Position numbers and translations under genes: made by a program. Shown here piece by piece: positions 13,570-31,730 of a stretch of DNA of 64,000 bases (the first letter of the stretch is position 1; each line of letters opens with the position of its first letter). The stretch is from IMG/VR virus record IMGVR_UViG_3300027899_000001, positions 248,001-312,000 of that record. One strand, written 5' to 3'. The notes under the pieces were generated by a model. It worked only from the letters and a program-made list of their open reading frames with translations, was not told the origin of the DNA and searched no databases.

Positions 13570-14180
13570 TTTACAAATTGTATTACTTCTTTTAATATTT
13601 GTTTTTTAGATCTAAACGCAGTTTCTTCCATAACAACTACTTCATCTACTTTTAACATAAGTTTATTTTTTATTTTTGAAAAATCATGTGCTTCTTTAAA
13701 CAATTCAAGTTCTTTAGTTTTTTGTTCTAAATTTTGTGAAAAAGAATCGCCATCTTCTTTAAGTAAAAAGAAATAAGGATCTGCTGTTAAAGTAATAAGA
13801 TATATGTCAAATTTATTGTCAACATAAGGTAATTCAGTAATTTCCCAGTTCATTAATTTATTTTTCAAAAAATTACCATCTACGTTTCTAAACATTTGAC
13901 CATATACATATTCTCCTAAGTGTGATCTATTCCATATAATTATGTCTTCATAATAATTATATCTAGAATAGCAAAAAACATTTTTAATTTTATGAACTAA
14001 TTGAATTTCATTATCAAAACATTTAAATTGATAATCTAAAGTTTCTTCAACAGTCATGCCTTTAGGAGGTTTTCCAAAATGTCTTATTGTAATATTATTA
14101 TAATCAAACTTTTTACAAATACCTTCAATAAGAGTAGATTTACCAAGTCTATCTCCCCCCTCGATCACAATGAGTTTCAT
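13566..14180 (-). CDS. Deoxynucleoside monophosphate kinase (thymidylate-kinase-like P-loop)
   Basis: 'IVIEGGDRLGKST' P-loop; 'WNRSHLGEYVYG' DR-type motif. Confidence 0.8.
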   Translation of the reverse strand: MKLIVIEGGDRLGKSTLIEGICKKFDYNNITIRHFGKPPKGMTVEETLDYQFKCFDNEIQLVHKIKNVFCYSRYNYYEDIIIWNRSHLGEYVYGQMFRNVDGNFLKNKLMNWEITELPYVDNKFDIYLITLTADPYFFLLKEDGDSFSQNLEQKTKELELFKEAHDFSKIKNKLMLKVDEVVVMEETAFRSKKQILKEVIQFVK

Positions 14181-15397: not shown

Positions 15398-15811
15398 TTA
15401 TAACTTCATCAAGTGTAAAAGTTTTTCACTTGATATAGTTAACGGTTCATTAACTGTTTCTTCTGAATTTATTGTAGGCGGGTGAGTCATATATATTCCA
15501 TATTTATCAACTAATTTAAGAAAAGCATCTTCAATACAGTTTGAATCTAATGTTCCATTTTTTAAATTAACTAAAGTAGAATATGTACTACTATCTAAAT
15601 TAGTATATCCTTGTTGACTAAATGACGCATGAGTTCCTGGCATTCCAGGAGGACCTTGAATTCCTGTCATTCCCGGTTGACCCACAGGTCCTACACTTCC
15701 TGAAATTCCTTCAGTTAATAAACTTGCTCTTACGTAATTTTTCATCCATTGTTCTTTTTTATCATCAATTGCATTAGTTTTTAATCTCGGTTCAATACTT
15801 GTATATCCCAT
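15398..15811 (-). CDS. Hypothetical protein with a short collagen-like (G-X-Y)n tract
   Basis: GISGSVGPVGQPGMTGIQGPPGMPG. Confidence 0.6.
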   Translation of the reverse strand: MGYTSIEPRLKTNAIDDKKEQWMKNYVRASLLTEGISGSVGPVGQPGMTGIQGPPGMPGTHASFSQQGYTNLDSSTYSTLVNLKNGTLDSNCIEDAFLKLVDKYGIYMTHPPTINSEETVNEPLTISSEKLLHLMKL

Positions 15812-17022
15812 TAGAATAAAGATTTTGATTTATTATTTAATTCTTTTGTATTATCCTGCATATAAACAGATTGAGTAGATAATGTACGATTACCTTTTAT
15901 TATTTCAACTATTTCTCGAGTTACATCCTCACATGTGCAAACTGGAACATTTTGAGTTATTTTAGGATATTCCTTTATACTTTCAAGTTCATAATCATGA
16001 GGTAATCCCATCAGGTGCATATATTCTCTTATATTAATAAGTCTATCCTCTGAAGGATGAAGTGTTCTATTCATCATCTCAGATATCACCGCGTACACAT
16101 AATCTCTATCTAATCCAAGAACACGATATCCAAGTCTAAAATTTTTACCCATCTCAGTCTTTTTAATAACATGAGCAGTATTCTTTTTAACTATATTAGA
16201 CGCGTTCGGTAAAGTTTCAAGAAAATCTTTAAAATCATATAATAATCCCTGTCGTTTAAGATAATCGTATGAAGTTAAATGAGTTTTATATGTTTTATAA
16301 ATTTCATTTTTCCAATCAGTTCCATATATTTTTTTAAAGAATTTTGTTATTTCATATTCATTTACATCTGAATCTTCATTCATATATTTATCTTGATAAC
16401 TTGCTCTTTTAGGTATATCTTTTAAATATTTAGAAATATTTGGCATCGGTCTATTATATGAATGTAATATAGGAGCGTATTTACCTTTTAGAAATATTGC
16501 AAATGTACGAGGACGAAATTGGGGAATTCCGTGCTTTATCGTATTTGTTTTATAAAATGTAACTGCATAATCATTTGCTTCAGCAATTTTAATAAGATTA
16601 TTTCTTACATCTTCTCCACTGCCTGTATAAAGGCCCGGAGCATTTTCAAATGCATAAATAGTTGGACTTAAAAAATCTAAGATAAAGACTGCTGATTTAT
16701 ACATCCATTCATTTGGTTCTGCAGTTCCTCTTGAACCCTTAGGACGTTGTGCAGCTTGAGATAATCCAGAACAAGGTGGAACTGCTGTGACAAAATCAAG
16801 ATTTTTAGAAAATTCTTGTAGTTTATGAACTTCGTTATCATTCATATTATCTAATTGAATATAAGGCACATCGTGTCCTTTTTTCAAAAGATATCTTCTC
16901 AATAAATCGTCATTAGCTTTAAAAGGAGTATAGGATGTAATTGCCAGAGGAGGGCTTCCTATTATATTCATATTTCCAAGAGCAAAACCTCCAGCAAGAG
17001 GTATATGTGCTATGTAACGCAT
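15811..17022 (-). CDS. DNA cytosine-C5 methyltransferase homolog with a divergent motif I
   Basis: Motif IV 'PPCSGLS', VI 'ENAPG', VIII 'GIPQFRPRTF', IX 'RLINIREYMHLMGLP', X 'QNVP'. Motif I reads 'IPLAGG' instead of FxGxGG. Confidence 0.75.
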   Translation of the reverse strand: MRYIAHIPLAGGFALGNMNIIGSPPLAITSYTPFKANDDLLRRYLLKKGHDVPYIQLDNMNDNEVHKLQEFSKNLDFVTAVPPCSGLSQAAQRPKGSRGTAEPNEWMYKSAVFILDFLSPTIYAFENAPGLYTGSGEDVRNNLIKIAEANDYAVTFYKTNTIKHGIPQFRPRTFAIFLKGKYAPILHSYNRPMPNISKYLKDIPKRASYQDKYMNEDSDVNEYEITKFFKKIYGTDWKNEIYKTYKTHLTSYDYLKRQGLLYDFKDFLETLPNASNIVKKNTAHVIKKTEMGKNFRLGYRVLGLDRDYVYAVISEMMNRTLHPSEDRLINIREYMHLMGLPHDYELESIKEYPKITQNVPVCTCEDVTREIVEIIKGNRTLSTQSVYMQDNTKELNNKSKSLF

Positions 17023-17084
17023 GTTAAAATATTTAATATAGTTTAATTATTATACCTTTAAAGAGATTAAAAGTTTTAATTTAT

Positions 17085-17116
17085 TAAAAAAAGAGACGCC
17101 CCTCGTAAGGAGCGTC
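17085..17116 (-). terminator. Rho-independent terminator with a UACG tetraloop
   Basis: Minus strand GACGCTCCT-TACG-AGGGGCGTC followed by TCTTTTTTT. Confidence 0.75.
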
Positions 17117-17146
17117 AGGCCAAAGATTCTATCTTTGGGGATGCAA

Positions 17147-17557
17147 CTATTTTTTACTTTTTACAAATATTAAAGAATCTATTTCTTTATGTTGTTCTTT
17201 AAGAACTTCTTCAGTTTTTTCTAATTGTTTATAGTTTATTGCTCTTTGAGTTTTTCTTAATGTATCAATTTCCACGGGTTCAATTTTCTTTTGAGTTGTT
17301 ATTTTTTTAGCTTCTTGTTGTACATCTTCTGTATCTAAAGATTTATCTTCATATGTAGTTTCATCGGGTGTTGTTATTACTAACATAGTAATAGTATCTT
17401 CTGAAATATTTAATACTGGCATAGTAGAATCAACACTATATTCATCTATACTATACATTTCTTTAGGCGGATTTGATCTTGACATACAAGCTCCACATGA
17501 TACAAAAATCATGTATAATAAAAATAATAATCCTATTGTAATTAGTTTTCTTTTCAT
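17147..17557 (-). CDS. Putative lipoprotein / membrane-anchored protein
   Basis: Basic N-terminus, hydrophobic stretch, 'FVSC' lipobox-like Cys. Confidence 0.45.
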   Translation of the reverse strand: MKRKLITIGLLFLLYMIFVSCGACMSRSNPPKEMYSIDEYSVDSTMPVLNISEDTITMLVITTPDETTYEDKSLDTEDVQQEAKKITTQKKIEPVEIDTLRKTQRAINYKQLEKTEEVLKEQHKEIDSLIFVKSKK

Positions 17558-17829
17558 TTCATTTGCATATATTGTATAATCTTGCCATTCAATAATTGTT
17601 GTTCAGTTAAAACACTATTAACCTTTTCAAGTTGATCGGTATTTTCATTAACTGCTTTTGTTAAAGTTTCTACTTGAACTTGTAACTTAGTATTTTTAAC
17701 AGTTTCAGAACGTATCCAACCTATAACTGATGCTAAAAATAAAACGATATATACTACATCTTTAACATTTGATATAAGCTTGCTCCACGGGGAAAGTTTT
17801 TTTTCTATTTTTTCCGGATTTATTGGCAT
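17554..17829 (-). CDS. Single-TM coiled-coil membrane protein (spanin/holin-like)
   Basis: TM 'VVYIVLFLASVIGW' followed by a heptad-rich tail; 4-nt overlap with the lipoprotein gene. Confidence 0.4.
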   Translation of the reverse strand: MPINPEKIEKKLSPWSKLISNVKDVVYIVLFLASVIGWIRSETVKNTKLQVQVETLTKAVNENTDQLEKVNSVLTEQQLLNGKIIQYMQMK

Positions 17830-17843
17830 TTCTAAAAATAATT

Positions 17844-18251
17844 TTAACCTCCTAAATTCATACCTCCTAAATCTGGGCCTTTTTCTGCTGCAGGTTCTGC
17901 TGGTACTGCAGCAGGTTCAGGCGATTTTTTCGCAGATTTAGGTTTTTCTGGTTCTTCTTTATCAATAAAATATTTTTTATATAAATTTATAGCAGCAGGC
18001 TCTTCAAAAATACCCTTTTTCATTCCTTCACTATAATATTTTTCATTCTCAGACAAATGTTGAAGAACAATTGTTTCAACTACTGATAAATCAGAAGAGT
18101 GTTCTTTTTCAACTTCCATTCCTACAAGAAATTCTCTTGAATCAACATCTTCAACAGTTAAACCGACTTTCTTTTGTCCTTTAAATATATCTTTATCGTT
18201 TGCTACTGATGATATAAATTCATTAAGACTTTCGTATACTAATTTTTTCAT
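17844..18251 (-). CDS. DUF5661-like protein with a capsid-targeting-like leader
   Basis: 'GMEVEKEH...I...HL.E...YY'; N-terminus MKKLVYESLNEF. Confidence 0.55.
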   Translation of the reverse strand: MKKLVYESLNEFISSVANDKDIFKGQKKVGLTVEDVDSREFLVGMEVEKEHSSDLSVVETIVLQHLSENEKYYSEGMKKGIFEEPAAINLYKKYFIDKEEPEKPKSAKKSPEPAAVPAEPAAEKGPDLGGMNLGG

Positions 18252-18263
18252 ATTATAGTTTAT

Positions 18264-18274
18264 TTTATATATTC
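18264..18274 (-). promoter_or_regulatory. Putative late promoter motif GAATATATAAA
   Basis: Exact 11-mer 13 nt upstream of the ATG at 18251. Confidence 0.5.
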
Positions 18275-18278
18275 ATAA

Positions 18279-18527
18279 TTAGGTTATAGATATAACTACT
18301 CCCCTGTCAGTAAATCTTCTTAATGCTTCAGTAACGTTTTCAATAGTAGCAGCGGGGTCATTCACTGTAATTGTTGCTTCGCTTTCTCTTGGATCTGGTC
18401 TATTACGTGGATCTGATCTATCAAATGGTTTATCAACTTGTGTAACATTTTGAAATTGTCTTTCTAGGGTGTGCGTAATTACATGAATCATTCCACGAGG
18501 GCCTTTAACTTCTACTTTAATTTCCAT
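18279..18527 (-). CDS. Hypothetical protein
   Basis: 82 aa ORF. Confidence 0.55.
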   Translation of the reverse strand: MEIKVEVKGPRGMIHVITHTLERQFQNVTQVDKPFDRSDPRNRPDPRESEATITVNDPAATIENVTEALRRFTDRGVVISIT

Positions 18528-18565
18528 AATTTTAATTTATTTTAGTTTATTTTAATATATATTCA

Positions 18566-18883
18566 TTAAATTTCATCTTCTGGTAAAATCTCTAAATCTT
18601 CTCCTTCAAGAAATGAATAAACATATTCATCTATAAATTGTTTTTGATATTCCGCAGGAGTATTATCAAGAATTGTATTTACAAGGTTATTTACGCCTTC
18701 TCTATTATAAAGTTCTTGTATTAAATAAGCAAATCCTTCATAATAAGTATCAACTTCTATATTATATCTTTTTAATTTTTCTGTAAGATATCTATTTCTA
18801 TTAAAACCTATTTTCATATCTTTAATAGGATCTGAATGTTCTTCAAATTTTTCATATAAAGATTCTTTAATAAGTTTTTTCAT
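18566..18883 (-). CDS. 'ESDPI-leader' family protein
   Basis: N-terminus MKKLIKESLYEKFEEHSDPIKDMKIG. Confidence 0.65.
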   Translation of the reverse strand: MKKLIKESLYEKFEEHSDPIKDMKIGFNRNRYLTEKLKRYNIEVDTYYEGFAYLIQELYNREGVNNLVNTILDNTPAEYQKQFIDEYVYSFLEGEDLEILPEDEI

Positions 18884-18891
18884 ATTAATAT

Positions 18892-19755
18892 TTATTTTTG
18901 ATCATCACCTTCCATAGCTCTAATTTCACGTCTATATTTCTTTTCATGTTCATATTCATACTCATGATAATCTGTAAAATACGGAGGTTTAGAAAGCTGT
19001 CTTCTATAATTTGCGCGGGGTACTATGTCTTTAAATGTAGGCGTTATAGTAAATCTTACTATTCGTGGTAATGTTACATCATCTTTTTTAAAATAATGTC
19101 TAATTAATCGCGGTTTAATTAAAATGGAAGAAAATCCCAAGTTATTAATAATATCTTTAACATATTTACCTAACTTATCAATTTCATTTTTCGGTAAGTT
19201 TTTAATTTTAGGATTATTAAACCAGAAATCTATATATCCATTACGTACATATACTGTAAAAATATAATGATTCTTATCAGCGTTTCCAAATAATTTAACT
19301 AAATCTTTGTATCTTGATTTTAATCCTATGCCCATATCATATATCGCATCATCACTTTCAATAAATTTTTCATCTATATGTTTTTGGGGTTTTATACGTT
19401 TTCCTGTATCTGGGTGTCTTTTAGGATATCCTAATTTTAATAATTTATTTCTTACACCCATATAAATATATGCAAAAGGATTACCAGTATGTCTGTTTTC
19501 CATTTTAGTATAATTCTTAGCGTATTCATCTAATATATTATAATATTTCCAATTAAATGCAGTATTTTCATCTTCAGGAAAAATGATATCATCAGGGATT
19601 TTATCTGTACCTAAAATAACAGTTAAATATTTAAAAAACCAATCTGCAGCGTCATCTTCATCTTTAAATCTACGTTTCGCATAAATTCCTATTCCTAAGT
19701 CATGAATGGGATCCGACTCTTCTATAAATTTTTCGTTAATATATTGTGCTCGCAT
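18892..19755 (-). CDS. 'ESDPI-leader' family protein, two tandem units
   Basis: N-terminal INEKFIEESDPIHDLGIG and internal IDEKFIESDDAIYDMGIG. Confidence 0.7.
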   Translation of the reverse strand: MRAQYINEKFIEESDPIHDLGIGIYAKRRFKDEDDAADWFFKYLTVILGTDKIPDDIIFPEDENTAFNWKYYNILDEYAKNYTKMENRHTGNPFAYIYMGVRNKLLKLGYPKRHPDTGKRIKPQKHIDEKFIESDDAIYDMGIGLKSRYKDLVKLFGNADKNHYIFTVYVRNGYIDFWFNNPKIKNLPKNEIDKLGKYVKDIINNLGFSSILIKPRLIRHYFKKDDVTLPRIVRFTITPTFKDIVPRANYRRQLSKPPYFTDYHEYEYEHEKKYRREIRAMEGDDQK

Positions 19756-19778
19756 TAAAGAGACTTTTATTTATATAT

Positions 19779-19928
19779 TTAATCTTCATAATATATAAAT
19801 TCACGTCCTTCATAGTTTTTTAATTTTACACAATTTCCTTCACGTCCAACGTAATAATCTGGTAACATAGGTATTTTACCACCCGGAGTATCAATAATAA
19901 ACTGAGGAACAAACCTAAATTTTTTCAT
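19779..19928 (-). pseudogene. Stranded 3' end of kamA, present as its own 49-aa ORF
   Basis: Hand-translated MKKFRFVPQFIIDTPGGKIPMLPDYYVGREGNCVKLKNYEGREFIYYED*; matches the canonical KamA C-terminal pattern (VP.F.ID.PGG.KIP..P.Y...L.NYEG). Confidence 0.8.
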
Positions 19929-19939
19929 GAATATATAAA
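19929..19939 (+). promoter_or_regulatory. Putative late promoter motif GAATATATAAA
   Basis: Exact 11-mer 8 nt upstream of the endonuclease ATG at 19947. Confidence 0.5.
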
Positions 19940-19946
19940 ATAAAAA

Positions 19947-20966
19947 ATGAAAGAATTCAAAAAAGAAAAGAATTTATTTATATGTGAAGAATGCCAACGC
20001 ACATTTGTTAAAATCGATGGGTTAAGTAAACATATAAGACTTAATCACTATTCTCAAAAAACATATTATGATAAATGGCTAAAAGAAAATGATGAAAATA
20101 CTTGTAAAATTTGTAAAAAAGAAACAACATTTATAGGATTAGGAAAAGGTTATAAAAATTGTTGTTCATCTGACTGCACTAAAAAATTTAGAACACATAA
20201 AATTCAAGCAACTTTATTACTTAGATATGGTGTAAATTCTCCTACTAAAGATAAAACTATTAGAGAAAAAGTAAATAAAACGATGATAAAAAAATATGGG
20301 CATAAATGCCCTATGAAAAATGAAAAAATACAAAAAGAAATAAAACAAAATAATTTAAAAAAATTGGAAGTAGAATATCCATTTCAGTCTTTAAAAATTC
20401 AAGAAAAAATAATTATATCTAATTTAGAAAATTTCGGAGTAAAAAATACGTTTCAACGAATAGATGTAAAAAATAAAATAAAAGAAACTTGTATGCAAAG
20501 ATATGGAGTTGAAAATCCAAATAATAATAAAAAAGTTAGAGATAAAATAGAAAAAACTTGTATAGATAAATATGGAGTTAAAAATCCATCACAGAATAAA
20601 GAAGTGCATGATAAACAACAAAAAAACGCGTGTTATTCAAAAAAATATAAAAATACTATTATAAACTATAGAGCATCTTATGAATATGATTTTTTAGAAA
20701 AATTTTACCCAGTATATTCTGATATAGTTAATGGCCCAACAATAAAATATCAATATAAAAATGAATCCAGATTATATTTTCCAGATTTTTACATTCCATC
20801 TTTAAATCTTATCGTTGAAATAAAAAATTCTTATCTTTTAAAAAAAGATAAAGAAAAAATAGAAGCAAAGAAAAAATATACTATTCTTAATGGGTATAAT
20901 TATTTAATAATTACTAATAAAGATTATTCTACATTTTCTTCATATCTTAAAATTTCTCCAGTATAA
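19947..20966 (+). mobile_element. Homing-endonuclease-like protein (C2H2 finger, YGV.NP repeats, C-terminal PD-(D/E)xK nuclease)
   Basis: 'FICEECQR...HIRLNH'; repeated 'YGVxNP'; 'YFPDFYIPSLNLIVEIK'. Confidence 0.7.
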
Positions 20967-22099
20967 CTTTTAAATTCATATACATGATCTTTATGCGATA
21001 TAATGTTATCACAGACTTCAATTTTTCCTAAATGAGAATCTACAATAAATGTTGGACACGCGTAACCACTCGTCCAGCCTCTCAATGCTGAGATAATCTG
21101 AAGTCCTTTATTAATAGTAGTTCTAAAATGACTTGTACCTGCAACAAGATCGCATGCATATATATAATATGGTCTAACTCTAATTGTAAGAAGACTATTC
21201 ATAAGCTTTTTCATAATTTGTGGGTCATCGTTAACGCCTTTGAGTAATACTGTTTGAGAACCTAAAGGAATTCCTGCATTCGCAAGCTTTTCACACGCTT
21301 GTTTAACTTCTGAAGTTATTTCATCGGGATGAGAGAAATGAATACTTATGAATAAAGGATGATATTTCTTTAAGATATTAGTTAACTCTGGCGTAATTCT
21401 TTGAGGTAACACAACAGGAACTTTAGTTCCAATTCTTAAGAACTCAACGTGTTTTATTTCTTTAATTTCTTTAAGAAGATATTCTATACTATCGTCATTC
21501 ATAGTTAAAGGATCTCCTCCAGATAATAACACATCTCGTATCTCAGTATGTTCTCTAATATACTGAAGCGCCTTTTCCCACGCTTTCTTAGGAATTCGTT
21601 CTCTATTTATGAGTCTACTTCTTGTACAGTATCGACAATTTGAAGAACAAAAGTCCGTGGTTAGAAATAATACACGATCTGGATATCTATGAACTATACA
21701 TTCCACAGGACTTTGATGTTCTTCGTTCAGCGAGTCGTTTTTCTCATTTTCAGTTACGTGAAGTTCGTTATTGGTTGGAATAACGCACTTTCCGATTCCT
21801 TCTGAAAGAGAAGTGATTGTACTTGCATAATATGGAGTAATTCTTAATGGTAAATTTATATTCTTGGATAATTCATAATTTGAATCTCCAAATATACGAC
21901 TCAATTCTTCATATGTAGTTATACTGTTACGTATCTGCCAATGCCAATCATTCCAATTAGTATCAGATACATCTGAATAAAATCTATTTTTAAAAGATTG
22001 AGTTTTTTCGGAGATGATAAGAGGGGGTTCTTCAGTATCAACGATAATCTCCTGAGCTGGTTGATACTGGTTTTTAGACGAATCTATTTGTTGTTCCAT
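20924..22099 (-). CDS. kamA: KamA-family radical SAM lysine 2,3-aminomutase
   Basis: 'WNDWHWQIRN', 'VHRYPDRVLF...CSSNCRYCTR', 'LLSGGDPL', PLP-Lys 'LLKGVND', 'VRPYY'. Confidence 0.85.
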   Translation of the reverse strand: MEQQIDSSKNQYQPAQEIIVDTEEPPLIISEKTQSFKNRFYSDVSDTNWNDWHWQIRNSITTYEELSRIFGDSNYELSKNINLPLRITPYYASTITSLSEGIGKCVIPTNNELHVTENEKNDSLNEEHQSPVECIVHRYPDRVLFLTTDFCSSNCRYCTRSRLINRERIPKKAWEKALQYIREHTEIRDVLLSGGDPLTMNDDSIEYLLKEIKEIKHVEFLRIGTKVPVVLPQRITPELTNILKKYHPLFISIHFSHPDEITSEVKQACEKLANAGIPLGSQTVLLKGVNDDPQIMKKLMNSLLTIRVRPYYIYACDLVAGTSHFRTTINKGLQIISALRGWTSGYACPTFIVDSHLGKIEVCDNIISHKDHVYEFKSYTGEILRYEENVE

Positions 22100-22179
22100 T
22101 TTGTAGTAAAAAATTTTACTTTTATATTCGTATTTTTAGTTTAGTTTTGTTCTATATATCAAAATTTTTGGGATAAAAA

Positions 22180-22255
22180 GATGGCGTGAACCTGGATCCC
22201 ACCCTGTACCTACGAAGATGATTTTCGTTGTTCTGACATTAAACTACACGCCATC
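22180..22255 (-). ncRNA. tRNA-like element (degenerate T-arm, UCA at the anticodon position)
   Basis: 9-bp closing stem GATGGCGTG/CACGCCATC; D-arm TA-GTTT-AATGTCA-GAAC-A; perfect ACGAA/TTCGT stem with 7-nt loop AATCATC; no GTTCRA T-loop. Confidence 0.45.
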
Positions 22256-22291
22256 CGGATTATGGTTAAATTTAGGGCCCAGCTAACCATC

Positions 22292-22636
22292 TTATTCTGG
22301 TAAGGTCATTTTAAAAAACTCGAAAATGGGATTAACATTTTGTTTAGAATGCATCGAAATGTCATCTAAGGTCCGTAGAGATATCGCGTTCTCTAAAGTA
22401 ATAGAACCATATTCTATCCAAAGACCTATAGAATCTACTTCATCTGGTGCACTGGTTAAAAGATCATCGAAAATACTCGTGACAATTTGTTCAGTCAATG
22501 CTTCGTTTAGTATATAGTTTTCAGGAATTTCAAATTTAGCAGATATTTTTTTAAGGTATTCTGCTTTGCCTTCTTCTATATCAGTATCTCTTTTCATCAA
22601 AGAGATTGATATACTTTTAATTAAGTTTAAATCCAT
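22292..22636 (-). CDS. Hypothetical protein
   Basis: 114 aa ORF. Confidence 0.55.
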   Translation of the reverse strand: MDLNLIKSISISLMKRDTDIEEGKAEYLKKISAKFEIPENYILNEALTEQIVTSIFDDLLTSAPDEVDSIGLWIEYGSITLENAISLRTLDDISMHSKQNVNPIFEFFKMTLPE

Positions 22637-22659
22637 AAACTAATTTTTTTATTATATAT

Positions 22660-22992
22660 TTATGTTTGTCTAATTCTAAATCCTCTTCGTTGTAACATTT
22701 TTTGTAACATCTCAGAATCAAACCAGGGGTTTTCTCCTTTTATTTTACAATATTCATTAATAAACATTTGTATATCATGATGATATTTTTCATTTATATA
22801 ATAAGTATTAGATTTAATTATATCGTTAGGTATTGTAGGAGTTTTTAAAATTTGAGGTAATATTTTTATTATATATTGAAACATTCGTACATCATCAGGA
22901 AAATTTTTCTTGGTGTGAGTTATTCCAATACCCATATCATAAATGGGATCAGATTCTTCTACAAATTTTTCAAATACATATTGCGCTTTCAA
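22660..22992 (-). CDS. 'ESDPI-leader' family protein
   Basis: MKAQYVFEKFVEESDPIYDMGIG (TTG start); its payload resembles unit 1 of 18892-19755. Confidence 0.7.
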   Translation of the reverse strand: MKAQYVFEKFVEESDPIYDMGIGITHTKKNFPDDVRMFQYIIKILPQILKTPTIPNDIIKSNTYYINEKYHHDIQMFINEYCKIKGENPWFDSEMLQKMLQRRGFRIRQT

Positions 22993-23007
22993 ATTTAATT
23001 TATTTTA

Positions 23008-23018
23008 TTTATATATTC
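23008..23018 (-). promoter_or_regulatory. Putative late promoter motif GAATATATAAA
   Basis: Exact 11-mer 16 nt upstream of the start at 22992. Confidence 0.5.
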
Positions 23019-23126
23019 AAAACTCTACATTAATATATAATAAAAGAGGTGAGGCTCTGACAAGCCAATTGGTAGTTTGGATAACCAACTGTCCCCCTTT
23101 AATTATATATTAGTCTAAAATAAAGT

Positions 23127-23816
23127 TTGGAAATCATGAATCATCAAAAAGTCTATGAATCTATAATTCAGAGAGCAAAATCTGAAAATAGAATTAAACT
23201 TAATAGAAATAATGAAAATTATATTTATTATGAAAATCATCATATTTTGCCCAAATGCTTAGGTGGAAATAATGATAAAGATAATTTGGTTTTATTAACA
23301 GCAAAGGAACATTATGTCTGTCATAAATTACTTACATATATTTATAAAGAAAACGCAAAAATATACGGTGCTTTTTTCTATATGTCATTTAATAAAAAAT
23401 ATGACAAATTTTTATCAGCTCGAGATTATGCTTACGCAATAGAATTAAATACTATCGCACATATTAATAAAAAACAATCGTTAGAAACAAAAGAAAAAAG
23501 AAGAAAATCAATGTTAGGTAAAAACAAAGGAAAAAAAATGAAAAAAGAATTTGGCGAAAACATTTCTAAACGTTTAAAAGGAAACATTCCTTGGAATAAA
23601 GGAAAACCCGGGTGTTTTTCAAATGATACTATTAATAAAATGTCAATAGCTGCAATAGGAGTAAAAAATTCATTAGAATCAAATGAAAAAAATAGGCAAT
23701 CTCATATAGGAAAAACTACATGGAATAAAGGATTAACAAAAGAAATTGATGAACGGGTTTTAAAATGTTCACTTAAAATTTCTAAAACTCTTAAAAATAA
23801 AAATTTATTAAATTAA
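23127..23816 (+). mobile_element. Free-standing HNH homing endonuclease
   Basis: 'YYENHHILPKCLGGNNDKDNLVLLTAKEHYVCHKLL'; paralog of 9287-9934; 'PWNKG' repeats. Confidence 0.8.
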
Positions 23817-24517
23817 GACTGGCCCGGACCCTTTATAGCAATTCCGCTAATTGCAGGGTTGGATCTATCATTAGGTTGCGAAAATTGTTTTACCCTATTC
23901 GCATCAGTTATATCGGCAGCATTTTGCTGAAGACCTATACTCTCTTCAACTTCTCCTTTGGCTGCTACTGCTTTACCATCTGTAACTTTATTAAGTTCTT
24001 CTGGAGCCATTGTTCCAAATCCTGAACGTTCTTCCCAATAATCTTTTCCATAATCAATTGTAAGTTGTTCTCCAGCTTTTATAGTTCTTGCTGCGATAAA
24101 ATACATTTGACGATTATCTTTATTATAAGCAAATGTGATATTTGGTTGAGGTGAATGCCCATATAAACTGCCATATCCAAGCACAATACCGTATTGCATT
24201 TTATTTTTATCGATTTCAAAAATATAATCTTTTAATCTTGGAACTGCTTTTGCTTCAAGACCCACAAAAATAATAGGCGCAATTTCAACTATTTCTCCTT
24301 TAGCATATTGTGTTTTAGCTAACACAAGATATCCTCCATTCTTTTTCTTAGAATATTCTACACGATTAACATTGAACACTTCTTTACGCGCTGTCAAGAA
24401 ACCCCCTTTATCAGCAATATGTGAAGGTTTTACTACGATATCTGTTTTTTCAAACGGATTGTAAAATTCTTCATCTAGTTTAGCAAATTGATCAAATGTT
24501 TTAATTTTATATTTCAT
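23813..24517 (-). CDS. SET-domain protein methyltransferase
   Basis: 'KNGGYLVLAK...KGEIVE', 'GSLYGHSPQPN' (NHS-like), 'AARTIKAGEQLTIDYG'. Confidence 0.8.
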   Translation of the reverse strand: MKYKIKTFDQFAKLDEEFYNPFEKTDIVVKPSHIADKGGFLTARKEVFNVNRVEYSKKKNGGYLVLAKTQYAKGEIVEIAPIIFVGLEAKAVPRLKDYIFEIDKNKMQYGIVLGYGSLYGHSPQPNITFAYNKDNRQMYFIAARTIKAGEQLTIDYGKDYWEERSGFGTMAPEELNKVTDGKAVAAKGEVEESIGLQQNAADITDANRVKQFSQPNDRSNPAISGIAIKGPGQS

Positions 24518-24538
24518 GATTGAATTAATTTTTTATAT

Positions 24539-25264
24539 TTATTCATCTGATATATTTCTTTCTTTCAACTTATGATAATATTGAGCAAATTTATGAGCTA
24601 ATATTTTTTTAACTTTAGGAGTTAAAAAAGTATTCCATAGTTCATAATGTACACCGAATATCTTTTTAAATTCATTATATAGATTATTGATGTTTTTAAT
24701 ATGCCCATTTTCATCAAAAAAATCTAATTTACTAATGGTTTCTAAGAAAAAAGAATGTATTTCTTCAGTACTATTATAATAACGACGATTAAACTGATCT
24801 CCTGAAAGTCCAGGCGCTTGATACGATTTTTTTAAGGGCATATTAGAATTTTTTCCTTTACTACGATACCAATTATATGCATGACTTAATTCATGTAGTA
24901 TTCTTTCATATTTATTTCCATGAATTATTATTAAGCCCTTTGAAAATTGTAATTCATTTAAAAGTCCATATTTTTTTAATTGAGCATTAGTTCTATTAAA
25001 AGCAGTGGGCGGTAAAAAGCTACCAGAAAATTCAAAATTAGGAAAATATAATCTAATTGCTACATCTTGTATCATTTTATACGTATCACTTTTTTCTATG
25101 TCTACTAAATCTTTTATAAAATATGTTTCATTTGATTTAATTTCTTTATTTTCAGTTTTACGTAAAATTATTTGCGCTAATTTTTTTAAGTCAATATAAC
25201 TATCATATGTTTCATTTAAAACAGAATATTTTTTATATAAATCGTAAGAGATAAAATTGTTCAT
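24539..25264 (-). CDS. Putative zincin-like metallopeptidase (HExxH)
   Basis: 'ILHELSHAY' with a downstream 'YYNSTEEI' Glu; leader ends in VLNE. Confidence 0.45.
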   Translation of the reverse strand: MNNFISYDLYKKYSVLNETYDSYIDLKKLAQIILRKTENKEIKSNETYFIKDLVDIEKSDTYKMIQDVAIRLYFPNFEFSGSFLPPTAFNRTNAQLKKYGLLNELQFSKGLIIIHGNKYERILHELSHAYNWYRSKGKNSNMPLKKSYQAPGLSGDQFNRRYYNSTEEIHSFFLETISKLDFFDENGHIKNINNLYNEFKKIFGVHYELWNTFLTPKVKKILAHKFAQYYHKLKERNISDE

Positions 25265-25281
25265 ATCTATTTTTATATGAA

Positions 25282-25893
25282 TTATGGCTTATATTGTATT
25301 GGCTTTGATTTATTAGTATCATCTTTATAATCTGAAAATGATTGAAATGTTTGTGATTTATATTTTGGCATCTTTCCTTTATTTGTTACAAAGATTTTTT
25401 TGAATTCATTAAAACTCATTGTTCCTACTGCCATGCGTTTAATTTGATTTATAAATTGAGAAATATGATTAGGATGAAGCAACATTGCTGTAAACTTTTT
25501 ACTTAATTCATTTTCCGTACCTGCATATCTTTTATATTCATATTCAGGAAGAGCCATTTTTCTAATGTATGTTCTTACTCCATTCAATAAAGATTCATAG
25601 TATTTTTTTGCTAATAAGTATTTTTCAATATAATCAGCAGCTTCGTAATAAAAATCAATATTATGTTCAACTTTATCAATTTCAGACTTAGGATAATTTC
25701 CTTCTAATTCACGAATGTTAATTTTATTTAACAAACTATTTAAACGATCAATATCGTCTAATGTTCTGCTTATAATAGTATCTTTTTGAATTTCAGAAAC
25801 TTGATTTGATTCAAATTGATCAAATACATCAGAAATACTTTTATATAAATATTTTGATTGTTTATAAAATTCTACTGTACTCTTTAAACTCAT
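25282..25893 (-). CDS. Hypothetical protein
   Basis: 203 aa ORF. Confidence 0.6.
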   Translation of the reverse strand: MSLKSTVEFYKQSKYLYKSISDVFDQFESNQVSEIQKDTIISRTLDDIDRLNSLLNKINIRELEGNYPKSEIDKVEHNIDFYYEAADYIEKYLLAKKYYESLLNGVRTYIRKMALPEYEYKRYAGTENELSKKFTAMLLHPNHISQFINQIKRMAVGTMSFNEFKKIFVTNKGKMPKYKSQTFQSFSDYKDDTNKSKPIQYKP

Positions 25894-25909
25894 TATTAAA
25901 ATTATTTTA

Positions 25910-26899
25910 TTATGCTAATTTACCTGTTTGTTCACCTTCTACTTTAGTTTCATCTGTGAGAGGCCCTTCAAATGATTTAGCATATTTAATATCGCATTGA
26001 TTGTTTTCTTTTTCTCCAACTATCTTATATGTTATTAATTTATCATCAACACTAACTATTACTACTTCTTTTTCTCCTATGCCTTTAATATTAATTTTAT
26101 ATTTTTTTCCAACTTCAAGTTTAGGAGTTTGTTTTTCTGTTTGTGCTTCTTCTTGATCTTTTTGTATTTTAGCCTTTTGTTCTTCTGTTTGTGTAGTAGT
26201 TTCTTGAATTTTCTCATCGTTGTATCTATTAGCATAAGAACTTTCATCATAAAGTTTGTAGGCTTCTTCATTAGTCAATACTTTTCTTGCATCAGCTTCA
26301 ATAGTTTTTGAAATGTATGAATATGCATTCATTTGAATTTGTGTATGTAATAATTGCCAATAATTTTTTAATTTAAGAGCAGCAGCATCTTTTCCACCTT
26401 TAAAAAATGCAGCTGTTGCATCTAATATTCCTGTTATAGTTGATGATGTTTCTGCATTACTAATTTTTTTATCAAAAGCAGCATCTGCATTAGATAAAAA
26501 TTTATCTACTGCGCCATAAATAGCATCTAATTGTCTTTTTTGTAAATTCGATGTCGTTTTAATTTTATTATTTAAAATTTTCTTTAATTCTTCGCCTTTT
26601 TTATTTTCTTTAATAGCTTCTGCTAAAGCAGTAGTTACACTTCTTTCTAATTTTAATACATTAGGAAGATATTTATTTATTATTTTTTCTGTTACTTGGT
26701 CTTGAGTTCTTTTTGCAGTTTTATTTAAAGTTCTTTTAATTCTACCCCATTTTGTAAAAAGGTTTCCTTTTTCTGTTTCGACATCTTCAGGTTTTCCTGC
26801 AATTGTTTCATTGGCTTCATTTAAACCCAATTCTTTAAATAAACTATTTCCATTTATATCAACAACTTCAGAAAGTTGTAAGTATTCACTATATTTCAT
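25910..26899 (-). CDS. Hypothetical helical protein with a capsid-targeting-like leader
   Basis: MKYSEYLQLSE...GLNE; 329 aa. Confidence 0.6.
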   Translation of the reverse strand: MKYSEYLQLSEVVDINGNSLFKELGLNEANETIAGKPEDVETEKGNLFTKWGRIKRTLNKTAKRTQDQVTEKIINKYLPNVLKLERSVTTALAEAIKENKKGEELKKILNNKIKTTSNLQKRQLDAIYGAVDKFLSNADAAFDKKISNAETSSTITGILDATAAFFKGGKDAAALKLKNYWQLLHTQIQMNAYSYISKTIEADARKVLTNEEAYKLYDESSYANRYNDEKIQETTTQTEEQKAKIQKDQEEAQTEKQTPKLEVGKKYKINIKGIGEKEVVIVSVDDKLITYKIVGEKENNQCDIKYAKSFEGPLTDETKVEGEQTGKLA

Positions 26900-26946
26900 A
26901 ATCTTCTTACTTTTATTTTTATATATATTCTAGTACAAAAAGCTTT

Positions 26947-26957
26947 GAATATATAAA
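26947..26957 (+). promoter_or_regulatory. Putative late promoter motif GAATATATAAA (divergent pair with the variant at ~26918-26930)
   Basis: Exact 11-mer 17 nt upstream of the ATG at 26974. Confidence 0.5.
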
Positions 26958-26973
26958 ATAAAATATTACTACT

Positions 26974-28281
26974 ATGAAACATGTATATGAATCTTTAAAA
27001 GAATTTAATGATTATAAATTCTTCAAACTTTTAGAAGAAAAAGAAGAACCTGGTACTGATAAGCAAAATCTACAATCTAAAGAAAAAGATGGTTTAGCTA
27101 TTATAGATAAGGTCATAAAGAATTTTGATGACTTTAAAAAAGATGCTAAAGGTGAAATTCTTAAGTATAAAGAATTCTGGGAAGAAAATCAGCAAACTAA
27201 AAAGGCATTTTCTAATGGAGATGTCTATAAAATGTATGATGGTAATTACGTTGTAGGTGTTCTTGAATTACCAGTAGAAACATTATCTGATGGTAGTATA
27301 GAAGGTGGATTAGGAGCAACAGATGAACCAGTAGAAGAGATTATTGAAGGCAAAGAATTAATGGAAGCTACAAAAGAAGAAGACGATTTAGGTCTTGATC
27401 TTGGTTTAACAGATGAACCCATAACAGAACCTAATACTAGTCCTGCTCCAAATGAAGTTCCAGCAGATCCTAATACACAAGAATTAGAAGAGCCTGCTCC
27501 TGATCAATCGGGAAATTCAGGATTAACTGATCAATCTCCAGTAGAAGAACCTCCAATGGATCAAGCACCAGTTGAAGAACCTTCGCCAGATCTTACAGCG
27601 CCCCAAACATATTTAGTAGTATATGACATGTCAGGTGATGATAAAGAAGAAATTTTTAGATGTGGTTCTAATAATGTAGTTCAAGGATTTCAAGCATTCT
27701 ATAATGACACTTTTAAAGGATCAATGAAAAATGCTATATTACAATATAAGAAACAAAAAGAACAAGAAAAAGCTGAAGCTGAAAAAACAGAGAAGAAAAA
27801 AGTTCAAGCTGAAAAACAAACTAAAGTTCAAAAATTCTTAGGTGAAGCTCTTGAAGAAGATATGCCAGAAGATGATGAAATGCAGTCTTGGCTTGATGAA
27901 GTAAGAGATTATCTTATATCTGAATATGAAATTGAAGAAGATGTAGTAGATGATTTCTTAGAATTAGCTTCTGAACAATTAGCTGATTTATTTGATGGAG
28001 GATCAAGTGCATTTGATGCAGCTGGAACAGTTGCTACAGATGAAGATATTTTATCAGAACTTGATAAAGATGATGAAGACGAAGATGATATTGACATAGA
28101 AGATGAAGATGAATTAGATGATGAAGATCTTGAGGATCTTGGTGAAGAAGAAGATGAAGAAGAATATCCTGAAGATGAAGATGATGAAGAAGATGATGAC
28201 GATACACATGAAGAAGAATTAGGAAAAATAATTGGAAGAGATACAATGAGACGTCCATTACGTTTATCAGATGAAGATTAA
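26974..28281 (+). CDS. Highly acidic low-complexity protein
   Basis: 435 aa; Pro/Glu-rich middle, D/E-saturated C-terminus; leader MKHVYESLKEF. Confidence 0.7.
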   Translation: MKHVYESLKEFNDYKFFKLLEEKEEPGTDKQNLQSKEKDGLAIIDKVIKNFDDFKKDAKGEILKYKEFWEENQQTKKAFSNGDVYKMYDGNYVVGVLELPVETLSDGSIEGGLGATDEPVEEIIEGKELMEATKEEDDLGLDLGLTDEPITEPNTSPAPNEVPADPNTQELEEPAPDQSGNSGLTDQSPVEEPPMDQAPVEEPSPDLTAPQTYLVVYDMSGDDKEEIFRCGSNNVVQGFQAFYNDTFKGSMKNAILQYKKQKEQEKAEAEKTEKKKVQAEKQTKVQKFLGEALEEDMPEDDEMQSWLDEVRDYLISEYEIEEDVVDDFLELASEQLADLFDGGSSAFDAAGTVATDEDILSELDKDDEDEDDIDIEDEDELDDEDLEDLGEEEDEEEYPEDEDDEEDDDDTHEEELGKIIGRDTMRRPLRLSDED

Positions 28282-28300
28282 TAAAATATAAAATTTAAAA

Positions 28301-28324
28301 CAAAGGGAACTTCGGTTCCCTTTG
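28301..28324 (+). terminator. Rho-independent terminator with a cUUCGg loop
   Basis: CAAAGGGAAC-TTCG-GTTCCCTTTG. Confidence 0.8.
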
Positions 28325-28370
28325 TTATTTAACAAAACTTTAACAAGATATCAGCGTATAATATAAAATA

Positions 28371-28385
28371 TTTGTTTATATTTAC
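28371..28385 (+). promoter_or_regulatory. Putative early/middle promoter element TTTGTTTATATTTAC
   Basis: Identical 15-mer upstream of the phosphoesterase at 63675-63689 (-). Confidence 0.45.
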
Positions 28386-28396
28386 AATAAAATTTT

Positions 28397-29203
28397 ATGA
28401 GCAAACACTTTGACGAAATTATCATAATTGGTCTTGAGAGGTGTCAAAACAGAATTGACATGGTTGAATCTCAACTTAAAAATTTTAATCTTCCCTATCG
28501 TATCTTTCCCGCATTTGATGGACAGCAAATAGCAAATCCGTCAATGAAAACAATGACACGTGCTCCTCTTAAAGCATTTTCTAATTTTAATCCCAGTAGA
28601 CCTAAATATCTTCCGGGTATGTTATGTTGTGGGTTATCTCATATAGCAGCAATGAAACATGCTCAGATGATGAATCTTAAAGGAATACTTTTACTTGAAG
28701 ATGATGTCATATTATCTCCTGATTTTGCAGATAGATTAAAATTGATTGAAGAAGTTCCAGACGATGCAGATTTAATTTATATTGGAGCTATTGTGACAAG
28801 CGATCATTTAAGTAAGAAATATAAAATATCTGAACATGTATGGGATGCTCAGAAAATGAGTCTTTACGCAACTCATTCCTTTATAGTCACGCGTAAAGGA
28901 TATACACCAGTTATTAAAAAAATGATGGAATGCGAAGATACATGCGATTCATTATTAGTTGAAGGTGTTCAAAAACAGGAAATTAAAGCATATGCAGTAA
29001 TTCCATTTTGTACATATCAAATAGAAGGAACATCAGAAATTGATGGTAAAAAGAAATCATTAAATCATACAAAAACTTTATATTCTCCGGATGAAAATTT
29101 TAGTAACATGGGAGGCTATGATCGTAAAACTAAAATGAATGTTAATGATATAACAAGTGAATATAGCTACGAAAAAAGTGCAAAACCTAAATCTTTATTC
29201 TAA
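28397..29203 (+). CDS. Glycosyltransferase, GT25-like
   Basis: 'IIGLER...R', 'AFDG', 'LCCGLSH', 'LLLEDD'; ends KPKSLF. Confidence 0.75.
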   Translation: MSKHFDEIIIIGLERCQNRIDMVESQLKNFNLPYRIFPAFDGQQIANPSMKTMTRAPLKAFSNFNPSRPKYLPGMLCCGLSHIAAMKHAQMMNLKGILLLEDDVILSPDFADRLKLIEEVPDDADLIYIGAIVTSDHLSKKYKISEHVWDAQKMSLYATHSFIVTRKGYTPVIKKMMECEDTCDSLLVEGVQKQEIKAYAVIPFCTYQIEGTSEIDGKKKSLNHTKTLYSPDENFSNMGGYDRKTKMNVNDITSEYSYEKSAKPKSLF

Positions 29204-29337
29204 TGAACGAAAACAAATGTCCAAAACATGAATTAGTCTTCGTAAGAAATATCTACGAAGACAAAAAAAGTGAATGGAAATGTTCTAAATGTGGAAAAAC
29301 AAAATATAAAAAATATCTTAATAAAAGAGAAAAATGA
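29203..29337 (+). CDS. Small Zn-ribbon protein (44 aa)
   Basis: Hand-translated MNENKCPKH...WKCSKCGK...*; overlaps both neighbours. Confidence 0.45.
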   Translation: MNENKCPKHELVFVRNIYEDKKSEWKCSKCGKTKYKKYLNKREK

Positions 29338-29561
29338 ATGCACAAGAATATATCGATTATCTTAAAGATTTTGCTGAAAAAATAGATGATGAAACTCTTA
29401 AATCAGTAGGAATTAAATCTATTGCAATTATACAAGAAGTTCTTGCAAAAGATCCAATGAAACCAAAATTATTGGTAAAAAAATTAGATGAAACACAATA
29501 TAGTGTATATGGTAGAGATGAAATTTTAACAGAATTGAACAGAATATTTAGAGACGTATGA
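29334..29561 (+). CDS. Hypothetical protein
   Basis: 75 aa ORF. Confidence 0.55.
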   Translation: MNAQEYIDYLKDFAEKIDDETLKSVGIKSIAIIQEVLAKDPMKPKLLVKKLDETQYSVYGRDEILTELNRIFRDV

Positions 29562-30802
29562 AAATAGCTTTAGTAATGGGAAGAGGCGCAGAAGGCGCCG
29601 GAATTCAACGATATGTTATTGAATTATCGACATTTTTATCTAAAAAACAAATTGAACATATTATCTATATCATGGATGATAAAAAATGGGGACGTGGAGG
29701 ATTTCAAACATTTCCTCAAAAACCATCTATGATTACAAAAGATAACATTGATAATTTTTCAGATGTATTGAATAAATTTGATTATGTGTTTATCAATAGT
29801 GTTCCAAGTATTAAACATTCAGAATGGGCTATTGATGGATTTCTTAAAATGGTCAAGGGTATAAAAACCAAAAAGATTATATTTCAAAATGATCATAAAA
29901 TAGCTTCTATTCATAGAAATGCTAATTTTATTGAGATGTGTGGTCTTTGTGATGGTATAGTATCTCATAGTATTACATCTCCTTTCTATAATAAACTTGT
30001 AGATGTATATGGAGGCGCTGTTAGATCTAAATTTATTCAACTTCAAGTAGGATTTAATTTCTCTCAGTTAGCAAAATATCGTAAAGAAGATCATGTTAAA
30101 AAAATTACATATCTTGGTAGATATGCTACATTTAAACAACCTGACAGATTATTTGCTTTTCTTCCTTATGCTAAAGATAATGATATATTACTTGAAATGA
30201 AAGGTGTTGAAAGATCACTTGGCGCTTTGAATATCTTTTATGATGATATCGAAAATAAAATTCCCAAACATGATATCATTCAGGTTGATAAAAATTTCTT
30301 TAAAACTGGAATGTCAGCTTTAGATGCTGATAGAAGTTATGAACATGTTTATATATATGGTCCTTATGATTATGTAGATGGAATGGAAACATTAAGCAAA
30401 TCATTAGTAGGCGCAGATTTTTATCATCTTAATGCAGATGCATATGGAGATAATTTTGAATATGCTCAATGTGAAATAATTGGAGTAGGAACAGTTCCTA
30501 TGTTTGATTATCATTGGGCAGAAAATTGTTACATATATGAAAATGGTAAGAAAACTGATAAAAGATTTGTAGAACTTGATACTTATGGACTTTTTGTTAA
30601 AAAAGATTTAACAAATGTAAAGGAAATAGTAGAAAAAATTAACAATATATATTCTGATAAGAAACTTCATAAACAATATTTAGATTGTAGTTTTGAAGTT
30701 ACACGAAATCATTGTGATAGTGAATTTATATTTCAAAATCTTATAGATGGTATTTCAGGATTAGAAAAAGCAAAACAAATAAAAACTAAACCCTTATTTT
30801 AA
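29558..30802 (+). CDS. agt: DNA alpha-glucosyltransferase, T4 AGT-like
   Basis: 'MGRGAEGAGI', 'INSVP', 'NDH...S.HRN', 'SHS', 'GRYATFK', 'GVERS', 'EYAQCE...GTVP.F' parallel T4 AGT as recalled; ends KTKPLF. Confidence 0.8.
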   Translation: MKIALVMGRGAEGAGIQRYVIELSTFLSKKQIEHIIYIMDDKKWGRGGFQTFPQKPSMITKDNIDNFSDVLNKFDYVFINSVPSIKHSEWAIDGFLKMVKGIKTKKIIFQNDHKIASIHRNANFIEMCGLCDGIVSHSITSPFYNKLVDVYGGAVRSKFIQLQVGFNFSQLAKYRKEDHVKKITYLGRYATFKQPDRLFAFLPYAKDNDILLEMKGVERSLGALNIFYDDIENKIPKHDIIQVDKNFFKTGMSALDADRSYEHVYIYGPYDYVDGMETLSKSLVGADFYHLNADAYGDNFEYAQCEIIGVGTVPMFDYHWAENCYIYENGKKTDKRFVELDTYGLFVKKDLTNVKEIVEKINNIYSDKKLHKQYLDCSFEVTRNHCDSEFIFQNLIDGISGLEKAKQIKTKPLF

Positions 30803-30803
30803 A

Positions 30804-31730
30804 ATGGCACGACCTAAAAAAGTAAAAGTAGAAGAACCTGCTAAAATAGCAGTAGAAGAAAAAGAAACTCTAAATGATATTATAATTGAAAAAAGTAACA
30901 TTTATCCATTAGGAGAAATACAGATTGTAGATAATCCGGTGTTTGAAGTTCCATATTTGGAATTTAATTATAATAAAGAGTCTGACACCATTTCTCTAGA
31001 AAAACAAAAACAAACAATACAAGTTAGCACTTCTAGAGTAGGCACGCATATAACTTCAGAACAAGCTAAAGAATTTAAAGATAAATTTAATTTAGACTTA
31101 AACGAAGTTGTTAAAAAAGCATTGATAAATGAAGCTTCTCAACAATTAACAAAACATTATATATCAAAAATTGGAGAAGCTGCTACAGAAAATTATATTA
31201 AAGAATATACCCGTTGGGATAAGTTTAAAGTATGGGCATATAAACTTGTTAAAAAACAATATAGAAAAAAAATAAAAATTCAAACTTCTAAAGAGTTAAA
31301 TTATAGAATTTTAAAAGAAGCCAATAATATTGCAGCAAATAGTAGATGGGGAAGTGGAAATTTTGTTATATGTAGTTTAAAAACTGCTATGCTTTTACAG
31401 AGTTCATCTAATTTTGTATATGCTACTTTAAATAAACCTGTATCTACAAATGGCAGTATTTATCCAATTGGAACTATTGCAGGCGTGACTATTTATGTAG
31501 ATCCTTATATGTTATATCAAGATACTAATGTATACATAGGAAGAAGAAATAATACAAATCAGCCTGGCATAAAACTATTTTTTAAAGAATCTTATAGTTA
31601 TATGCAAACGGAAGGTCTTGGTGCTCCAAAGGTTATATTAGAAATGAGATACGCAATCGCAGGCGTTGGTAAAAATTATAAAGACCAATATAGAAAATTT
31701 GAATACATTGATAAAATCATAAACAAATGA
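30804..31730 (+). CDS. Truncated paralog of the major capsid protein
   Basis: 'NGSIYPIGTIAGVTIYVDPYMLYQDTNVYIGR...TEGLGAPKVILEMRYA' aligns with 'NGSLYPLGTIAGMTLYVDPNMLYSDTRVLVGR...TEGTGAPKVIIKTRYA' in 56803-58575. Confidence 0.8.
   Translation: MARPKKVKVEEPAKIAVEEKETLNDIIIEKSNIYPLGEIQIVDNPVFEVPYLEFNYNKESDTISLEKQKQTIQVSTSRVGTHITSEQAKEFKDKFNLDLNEVVKKALINEASQQLTKHYISKIGEAATENYIKEYTRWDKFKVWAYKLVKKQYRKKIKIQTSKELNYRILKEANNIAANSRWGSGNFVICSLKTAMLLQSSSNFVYATLNKPVSTNGSIYPIGTIAGVTIYVDPYMLYQDTNVYIGRRNNTNQPGIKLFFKESYSYMQTEGLGAPKVILEMRYAIAGVGKNYKDQYRKFEYIDKIINK

Follow-up and report, generated by a model that had tools for sequence, protein, structure and literature searches.

Studies of phages T4 and RB69 have shown that a C-terminal hydrophobic peptide of the replicative polymerase gp43, also found on gp33 and gp55, serves as a clamp-interaction peptide, and the RB69 gp43 peptide is bound in the pocket of the sliding clamp gp45 in structure 1B8H (PMC3012046). 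T4 gp43 ends KASLDFLFG, RB69 carries KKASLF, and T4 gp55 ends SLDFLYEAND. A DNA-modifying enzyme has also been linked to this clamp, given that T4 alpha-glucosyltransferase (alpha-GT) binds gp45 in pull-downs (Sommer et al. 2004; confirmed in PMC13216743) and is thought to glucosylate 5-hmC at the fork by riding the clamp. In eukaryotes, the PIP box (Qxxhxxaa) recruits clients to PCNA, and the DNMT1-PCNA interaction couples maintenance methylation to replication by the same logic. In bacteria, the motif QL[SD]LF, often C-terminal, is shared by polymerases, ligase and repair enzymes that bind the beta clamp.

Here we examined a window of 64,000 nucleotides (positions 248,001 to 312,000 of IMGVR_UViG_3300027899_000001), which is part of a 405 kb contig of a Lak-megaphage relative; a megablast of its 15-32 kb region against the phage collection found nothing. 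Three candidate DNA-modifying enzymes of unrelated families end in the same short peptide. The C5-cytosine DNA methyltransferase (C5-MTase) homologue (15811-17022, minus strand, 403 aa) ends NNKSKSLF, with K-S-K-S-L-F encoded at 15814-15831 and the TAA stop at 15811-15813. The GT25-family glycosyltransferase (28397-29203, plus strand, 268 aa) ends SAKPKSLF, with K-P-K-S-L-F encoded at 29183-29200 and the TAA stop at 29201-29203. The T4-type DNA alpha-glucosyltransferase (AGT) homologue (29558-30802, plus strand, 414 aa) ends QIKTKPLF, with K-T-K-P-L-F at 30782-30799, also followed by TAA. Since all three stops are TAA, the TAG recoding (code 15) that this phage group can use cannot extend these proteins, and no long gene of the window needs read-through.

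The assignment of the three enzymes to their families is well supported. The methyltransferase matches PF00145 at 1.6e-22 and has the PPCSG, ENAPG and QFRPRTF motifs, together with a weak match to PDB 3g7u. The GT25 enzyme matches PF01755 at 5.7e-14 (52.9 bits against a cut-off of 24) and phrog_2835. The AGT homologue matches PF11440 at 1.6e-11 and phrog_2888 at 3.8e-62, and aligns end to end with T4 a-gt (residues 1-400 against 1-399, 25% identity, E 5e-24). T4 a-gt ends FDIITK and has no recognisable tail, whereas in the phage enzyme a 14-residue C-terminal extension (30758-30799), beyond the T4 fold, carries an explicit polymerase-like peptide that two further enzymes share. Tails have low pLDDT in the two structural models made.

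The shared ending could in principle be a coincidence in an AT-rich, Lys-rich proteome, given that Lys, Leu and Phe codons are AT-rich, or a DNA-level signal for restarting translation of the next gene, as the MTase and GT25 tails share 17 nt including a TAATG stop/start overlap. However, K.K[SP]LF is expected 3e-4 times in the 90 proteins of the window. In a pattern-agnostic Monte Carlo, three proteins sharing at least 4 of the last 6 positions gave P = 8e-4, and a column shuffle gave 0.005. Moreover, the tail is conserved in orthologues while the residues before it drift. It is kept in 23 of 23 IMG/VR AGT homologues at 66-76% identity, with synonymous codon changes, and 13 of 15 GT25 orthologues at 56-78% identity end K-x-L-F. 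Of 114 full-length MTase homologues (39-100% identity), 113 end in LF, and 87 of these in [KR].LF. This conservation, with synonymous changes and different downstream sequences, indicates selection at the protein level and effectively refutes chance or a DNA-level signal.

The sequence-only reading of the window had proposed that K-x-K-[SP]-L-F is the clamp-binding motif of this lineage, and had predicted its presence on polymerase, ligase, RNase H, gp33 and gp55. Our results support this interpretation, although the core is broader than proposed, namely [KR]-x-L-F-COOH and minimally LF-COOH. Single-protein searches with the N-terminal part of the Lak polymerase found only close Lak relatives, but an exact 51-mer search placed the sequence encoding GNLIYARSLF and its stop on the contig of the window. 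This is the C-terminal gene of a split T4-type family-B DNA polymerase, which carries PF00136 and occurs in the same samples as the AGT of the window. All near-clade polymerases end A[KR]SLF and more distant ones x-L-F or x-L-W, and 110 polymerases in related loci end in LF. In related phages, the tail also ends a 5'-3' exonuclease (FEN/RNase H), in one case on a contig that also has a tailed AGT, an NAD ligase, the DnaB/gp41 replicative helicase, a Dam methylase, a GT1-like glycosyltransferase and DUF488-N3a. Contrary to the prediction, gp55 homologues end LYS[LF], not LF. No gp33 was found. LF is the commonest C-terminal dipeptide in the survey, in 330 of 5114 genes against 0.42% expected (about 15-fold enrichment), although this figure is biased because the loci were chosen around polymerase, AGT and gp44 genes. 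In the phage's own genome, LF ends 8 of 191 genes against 0.75 expected.

Taken together, these data suggest, with moderate confidence, that the [KR]-x-L-F-COOH peptide is a short docking motif copied from the tail of this lineage's replicative polymerase, which by analogy with T4/RB69 gp43 most likely inserts into the hydrophobic pocket of the phage's sliding clamp. Enzymes that carry it would ride behind the fork. As in T4/RB69, the peptide lies at the extreme C-terminus of a T4-type family-B polymerase. Of the T4 and RB69 sequences only the K/R-[AS]-S-L-F portion (a basic residue, a small residue, Leu and an aromatic residue) is shared, and of the known clamp clients polymerase, FEN and NAD ligase carry the peptide in relatives but gp55 homologues do not. 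It differs in being shorter and ending exactly at LF-COOH, with no acidic residue and a single aromatic one, and in being found also on DNA methyltransferases and glycosyltransferases. Unlike the PIP box, the tails have no conserved Gln and only one aromatic residue, and their position is strictly C-terminal. Binding to the clamp is inferred from the T4/RB69 polymerase tail and the T4 alpha-GT-gp45 interaction, and no clamp gene was identified. T4 gp45 and gp62 gave no hit by BLAST or phmmer in Lak-A1 or any locus, the genes next to gp44 were a TnpB-like protein, NUDIX and homing endonucleases, and hhalign of two candidates against gp45 gave a probability below 1%.

The absence of an identified clamp leaves room for other receptors. 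The replicative helicase and a conserved 140-200 aa protein next to it carry the tail, and neither is a classical clamp client, so that the peptide might dock on another replisome hub, such as the gp32-type SSB, the helicase/primase or helicase loader, or the polymerase itself. There is a precedent in T7, where the C-terminal aromatic residues of gp4 and gp2.5 bind the polymerase. We consider this unlikely, given that the polymerase itself carries the tail at the position homologous to the T4/RB69 clamp-binding peptide, that FEN and ligase are classical clamp clients, and that T4 alpha-GT binds gp45. The host beta clamp (DnaN) is a somewhat less likely receptor. KSLF and RSLF appear to resemble the C-terminal half of QL[SD]LF, but the conserved Gln and first Leu of the bacterial motif are absent and Lys/Arg is conserved instead. 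In addition, the lineage encodes an RFC/gp44-type clamp loader, found in Lak-A1 and relatives, which may imply its own PCNA-like clamp; this phage group typically has one (PMC7824862), although none was detected here by sequence. Since all carriers are probably early or middle DNA-metabolism proteins, and hydrophobic C-termini can act as degrons, the tail could also be a degradation or sorting signal (a tail-specific protease or Clp degron, or a packaging tag) that times or places these enzymes with no docking at the fork. This seems very unlikely, because the tail lies at the position of, and resembles, the structurally defined T4/RB69 peptide, basic-plus-aromatic peptides are typical clamp ligands, and the essential polymerase and helicase would not be expected to carry a degron.

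The window also encodes a homologue of the T4 dCMP hydroxymethylase gp42 (11683-12384, minus strand), with 51% identity to T4 gp42 over the full length (E 7e-85), a PF00303 assignment and the RND motif with the cytosine-specifying Asp. This enzyme is the likely source of 5-hmC, the substrate of the AGT. DNA made with 5-hmC would then be glucosylated or otherwise modified as it is synthesised, although co-replicative modification remains an inference and a C5-MTase has no obvious substrate if cytosine is fully replaced by 5-hmC. Phage glycosyltransferases acting on 5-hmC (T4 a-gt and b-gt, and the GT-A/JGT-like and GT-B enzymes of bioRxiv 10.1101/2023.12.21.572611) similarly sit with a ThyS/gp42-like hydroxymethylase and a C5-MTase, with a GT-A-fold and a GT-B-fold enzyme side by side. 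That work describes post-replicative action and mentions neither GT25 nor a docking tail. GT25 has not been shown to act on DNA, and in our case the inference of DNA glycosylation rests only on the tail and on the position of the gene next to the AGT. It is possible, though tentative, that LF-COOH defines a whole set of clamp clients in Lak-like huge phages, including a co-replicative hypermodification line in which the C5-MTase-like, AGT and GT25 enzymes act on 5-hmC DNA. In that case GT25 would be a new family of DNA glycosyltransferases, and the tag would help to pick out DNA-directed enzymes, with GT25 enzymes, the Dam methylase, DUF488-N3a and several unknown proteins as candidates, among the many transferases of unknown target in these uncultured phages.

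Two GT25 paralogues lack the tail, one at 32299-33018 (plus strand; PF01755 at 1.1e-11), which ends GINETDYE, and one at 43841-44512 (plus strand; PF01755 at 1.8e-25), which ends QYFRNTI. About 25 sugar-pathway genes in the window have no conserved LF tail. A 156 aa helicase-adjacent protein had no Pfam, PHROG or PDB sequence hit, and its AF2 model (pLDDT 71) had no Foldseek match. A 321/361 aa family had no Pfam or PHROG hit and an AF2 model too poor to search (pLDDT 52), with only an Atlas lead pointing to DUF6492/GT-A, and the 435 aa protein upstream of the GT25 gave nothing. The only other LF end among the 90 genes of the window, YNTLF on a GT8-like protein (52191-52967, plus strand; weak Pfam GT8 match), is probably a chance one, since the 58%-identical orthologue ends KTIEYN. 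The DDLF end of the RNR small subunit is the known R2-R1 tail.

The window has a GC content of 27% and lies at about 248-312 kb of the IMG/VR contig IMGVR_UViG_3300027899_000001 (405,016 bp). Its major capsid protein (56803-58575, minus strand) is 48% identical to that of the Prevotella Lak megaphages, and no closer relative was found in the phage collection. Lak phages recode TAG, and the ORFs of Lak-A1 carry many in-frame TAGs, but no long gene of the window needs read-through. The three shared endings noticed in the sequence-only reading were confirmed, and each of them stops at TAA. The MTase homologue (15811-17022, minus strand) ends in NNKSKSLF, the GT25 (28397-29203, plus strand) in SAKPKSLF and the AGT homologue (29558-30802, plus strand) in QIKTKPLF. 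Profile searches assigned the MTase to PF00145 (E-value 1.6e-22), with catalytic PC, ENA and QxRxR motifs, the GT25 to PF01755 (5.7e-14) and the AGT to PF11440 (1.6e-11), the latter also matching phrog_2888 at 3.8e-62. These are three different folds, a class-I methyltransferase, GT-A and GT-B. A radical-SAM enzyme of the lysine-2,3-aminomutase type (20924-22099, minus strand) and a SET-domain protein (23813-24517, minus strand), both of unknown function, lie between the MTase and the glycosyltransferases.

Among 90 non-overlapping genes of the window, the pattern K.K[SP]LF is expected 3e-4 times. A test that does not presuppose the pattern, asking how often three proteins share at least 4 of the last 6 positions, gave P = 8e-4, or 0.005 with column shuffling. 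As the sequence-only reading had stated, the two GT25 paralogues lack the tail. All 23 AGT homologues found in IMG/VR (66-76% identity) end in [IV]-K-x-K-x-L-F, with one G-S-K-P-L-F, while the x positions, the synonymous codons and the downstream sequence vary. Among the GT25 orthologues (56-78% identity), 13 of 15 end in K-x-L-F. In the case of the MTase, 113 of 114 full-length homologues, down to 39% identity, end in LF, and 87 of them in [KR]-x-L-F, while the ten residues before drift freely. The AGT aligns with T4 a-gt from residue 1 to 400, where the T4 protein ends, so that its last 14 residues are an appended extension. The YNTLF end of a GT8-like protein is not kept in its orthologue of 58% identity and is best seen as chance. 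The tails of the MTase (15814-15831) and the GT25 (29183-29200) share 17 identical nucleotides (AAATCTTTATTCTAATG), including a TAATG stop/start overlap with the next gene; however, orthologues show synonymous changes, so the selection acts on the protein. Both chance and a DNA-level signal are excluded by the conservation data.

The complete Lak-A1 genome encodes T4-like gp41, UvsX, gp44, gp46, gp47 and a split gp43. A library-wide search with the N-terminal part of the polymerase gave many split and some full-length polymerases, and the full-length ones end in x-L-F or x-L-W, for example TTKKLF, MEKLF, MPSLF, LDSLF and VPLW. Loci for the C-terminal part show that the clade nearest the window ends in NLIYA[KR]SLF without exception, while more distant clades end in RTQLF, TKKLF and NNSLF. 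An exact 51-nt probe from one such gene hits two IMG/VR contigs, one of which is the window's own contig. The gene (389 aa, PF00136) is also found in the same JGI and Logan samples as the window's AGT. The phage's own polymerase thus ends in ARSLF, and its last four residues are of the same type as the KSLF of the MTase and GT25 and the KPLF of the AGT. In this lineage the family-B polymerase is split into separate N- and C-terminal genes (locus L319, 10001-12207; Lak-A1 loci L030, 6064-7611, and L034, 34063-37301). In the window's own genome the C-terminal gene is followed by a DUF7487 homing endonuclease, and in Lak-A1 the C-terminal part also carries an intein at the DTDS motif. The window itself is dense in homing endonuclease genes (NUMOD3, DUF7487/TnsA-like and HNH; 9287-9934, 14149-15069, 19947-20966, 23127-23816 and 47805-48566).

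We also surveyed 191 genes of the phage's own genome, namely those of the window plus about 75 kb reached by walking, and eight of them end in LF against 0.75 expected. They are the three enzymes, the polymerase, a 156 aa protein next to the helicase (KTKRLF), a 140 aa protein, an ankyrin protein and the doubtful GT8-like protein. The 140 aa protein (own-genome locus L411, 983-1405), of unknown function, ends in KCKAKALF, lies next to a gene with a faint N6-MTase hit and is a further candidate client. In relatives, the tail ends a 5'-3' exonuclease of the FEN/RNase H family, including one on a contig that also has a tailed AGT, as well as an NAD-dependent ligase, the DnaB/gp41 helicase, a D12 (Dam) methyltransferase and a GT1-like glycosyltransferase. 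Small DUF488-N3a proteins carry the x-L-F end in Lak-A1 (locus L029, 27954-28352) and in two other clades (loci L129, 1882-2256, and L043, 12635-13180), and this family is a candidate fork-associated enzyme. In some relatives, a 321/361 aa family with a TDDD motif and an Atlas lead to GT-A/DUF6492 replaces the GT25 just upstream of the AGT. A 140-200 aa protein, predicted to be all-helical, sits just after the replicative helicase (own-genome locus L319, 16928-17398) and has 99 members in related loci; in a 13-member alignment, the terminal Leu and Phe are its only invariant columns, and no Pfam, PHROG, PDB or fold match was found. Across 5114 genes in 273 loci, LF is the commonest C-terminal dipeptide, ending 330 genes (6.5%) against 0.42% expected. 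Although this figure is biased, given that the loci were chosen around polymerase, AGT and gp44 genes, it is still about 4% without the polymerase and AGT families. An RNR small subunit ending in DDLF was a false positive, since this is the known R2-R1 tail.

In T4 and RB69, the extreme C-terminus of gp43 is the clamp-binding peptide. T4 gp43 ends in KASLDFLFG and gp55 in SLDFLYEAND, and the RB69 peptide is seen in the gp45 pocket in structure 1B8H (PMC3012046). Moreover, T4 alpha-GT co-purifies with gp45, whereas beta-GT does not (Sommer 2004; PMC13216743). The lineage has a gp44-type clamp loader, and phages of this group are described as having a PCNA-type clamp (PMC7824862). The most economical reading is therefore that [KR]-x-L-F-COOH, a core broader than the K-x-K-[SP]-L-F of the sequence-only reading, is the clamp-interaction peptide of this lineage, and that the three enzymes borrow it to act at the fork. 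This is inferred without binding or co-folding data, and no clamp gene was found in our searches. The gp55 homologues, which the sequence-only reading expected to carry the tail, end in LYS[LF] and not in LF. A tailed helicase is not a classical clamp client, and the peptide may instead dock on another replisome hub. It may also bind the host beta clamp, whose motif QL[SD]LF ends alike but whose Gln is missing here, or act as a degron.

The window also encodes a full-length homologue of the T4 gp42 dCMP hydroxymethylase (11683-12384, minus strand; 51% identity), in which the cytosine-specifying Asp is kept. The DNA is therefore probably made with 5-hmC, the substrate of the AGT, although it is then unclear what the neighbouring C5-MTase homologue methylates. 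C-terminal clamp peptides and the contact between T4 alpha-GT and gp45 are already known. Recent work on phage DNA glycosyltransferases does not mention GT25 or a docking tail, and no description of this motif was found in our literature searches. What is new is the consensus, the large phage lineage in which it occurs, and the proposed clients, which are methyltransferases, glycosyltransferases and DUF488.

A sugar-biosynthesis and glycosyltransferase cluster of about 25 genes (32000-56300, plus strand) lies between a Gp23-like paralogue (30804-31730) and the major capsid gene. It includes an NDP-hexose 2,3-dehydratase, a DegT aminotransferase, a GDP-mannose 4,6-dehydratase, C- and O-methyltransferases, and GT25, GT2-, GT8- and GT47-like enzymes, is interrupted by one of the homing endonuclease genes, and may glycosylate the virion or the host surface. 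None of its genes has a conserved LF tail, which fits the idea that the tag separates DNA-directed enzymes from the rest. Further along, a prohead protease domain is fused to a long C-terminal region (58658-61003, minus strand; 781 aa), and a DenV-type pyrimidine-dimer glycosylase (61233-61697, plus strand) is found next to the capsid genes.
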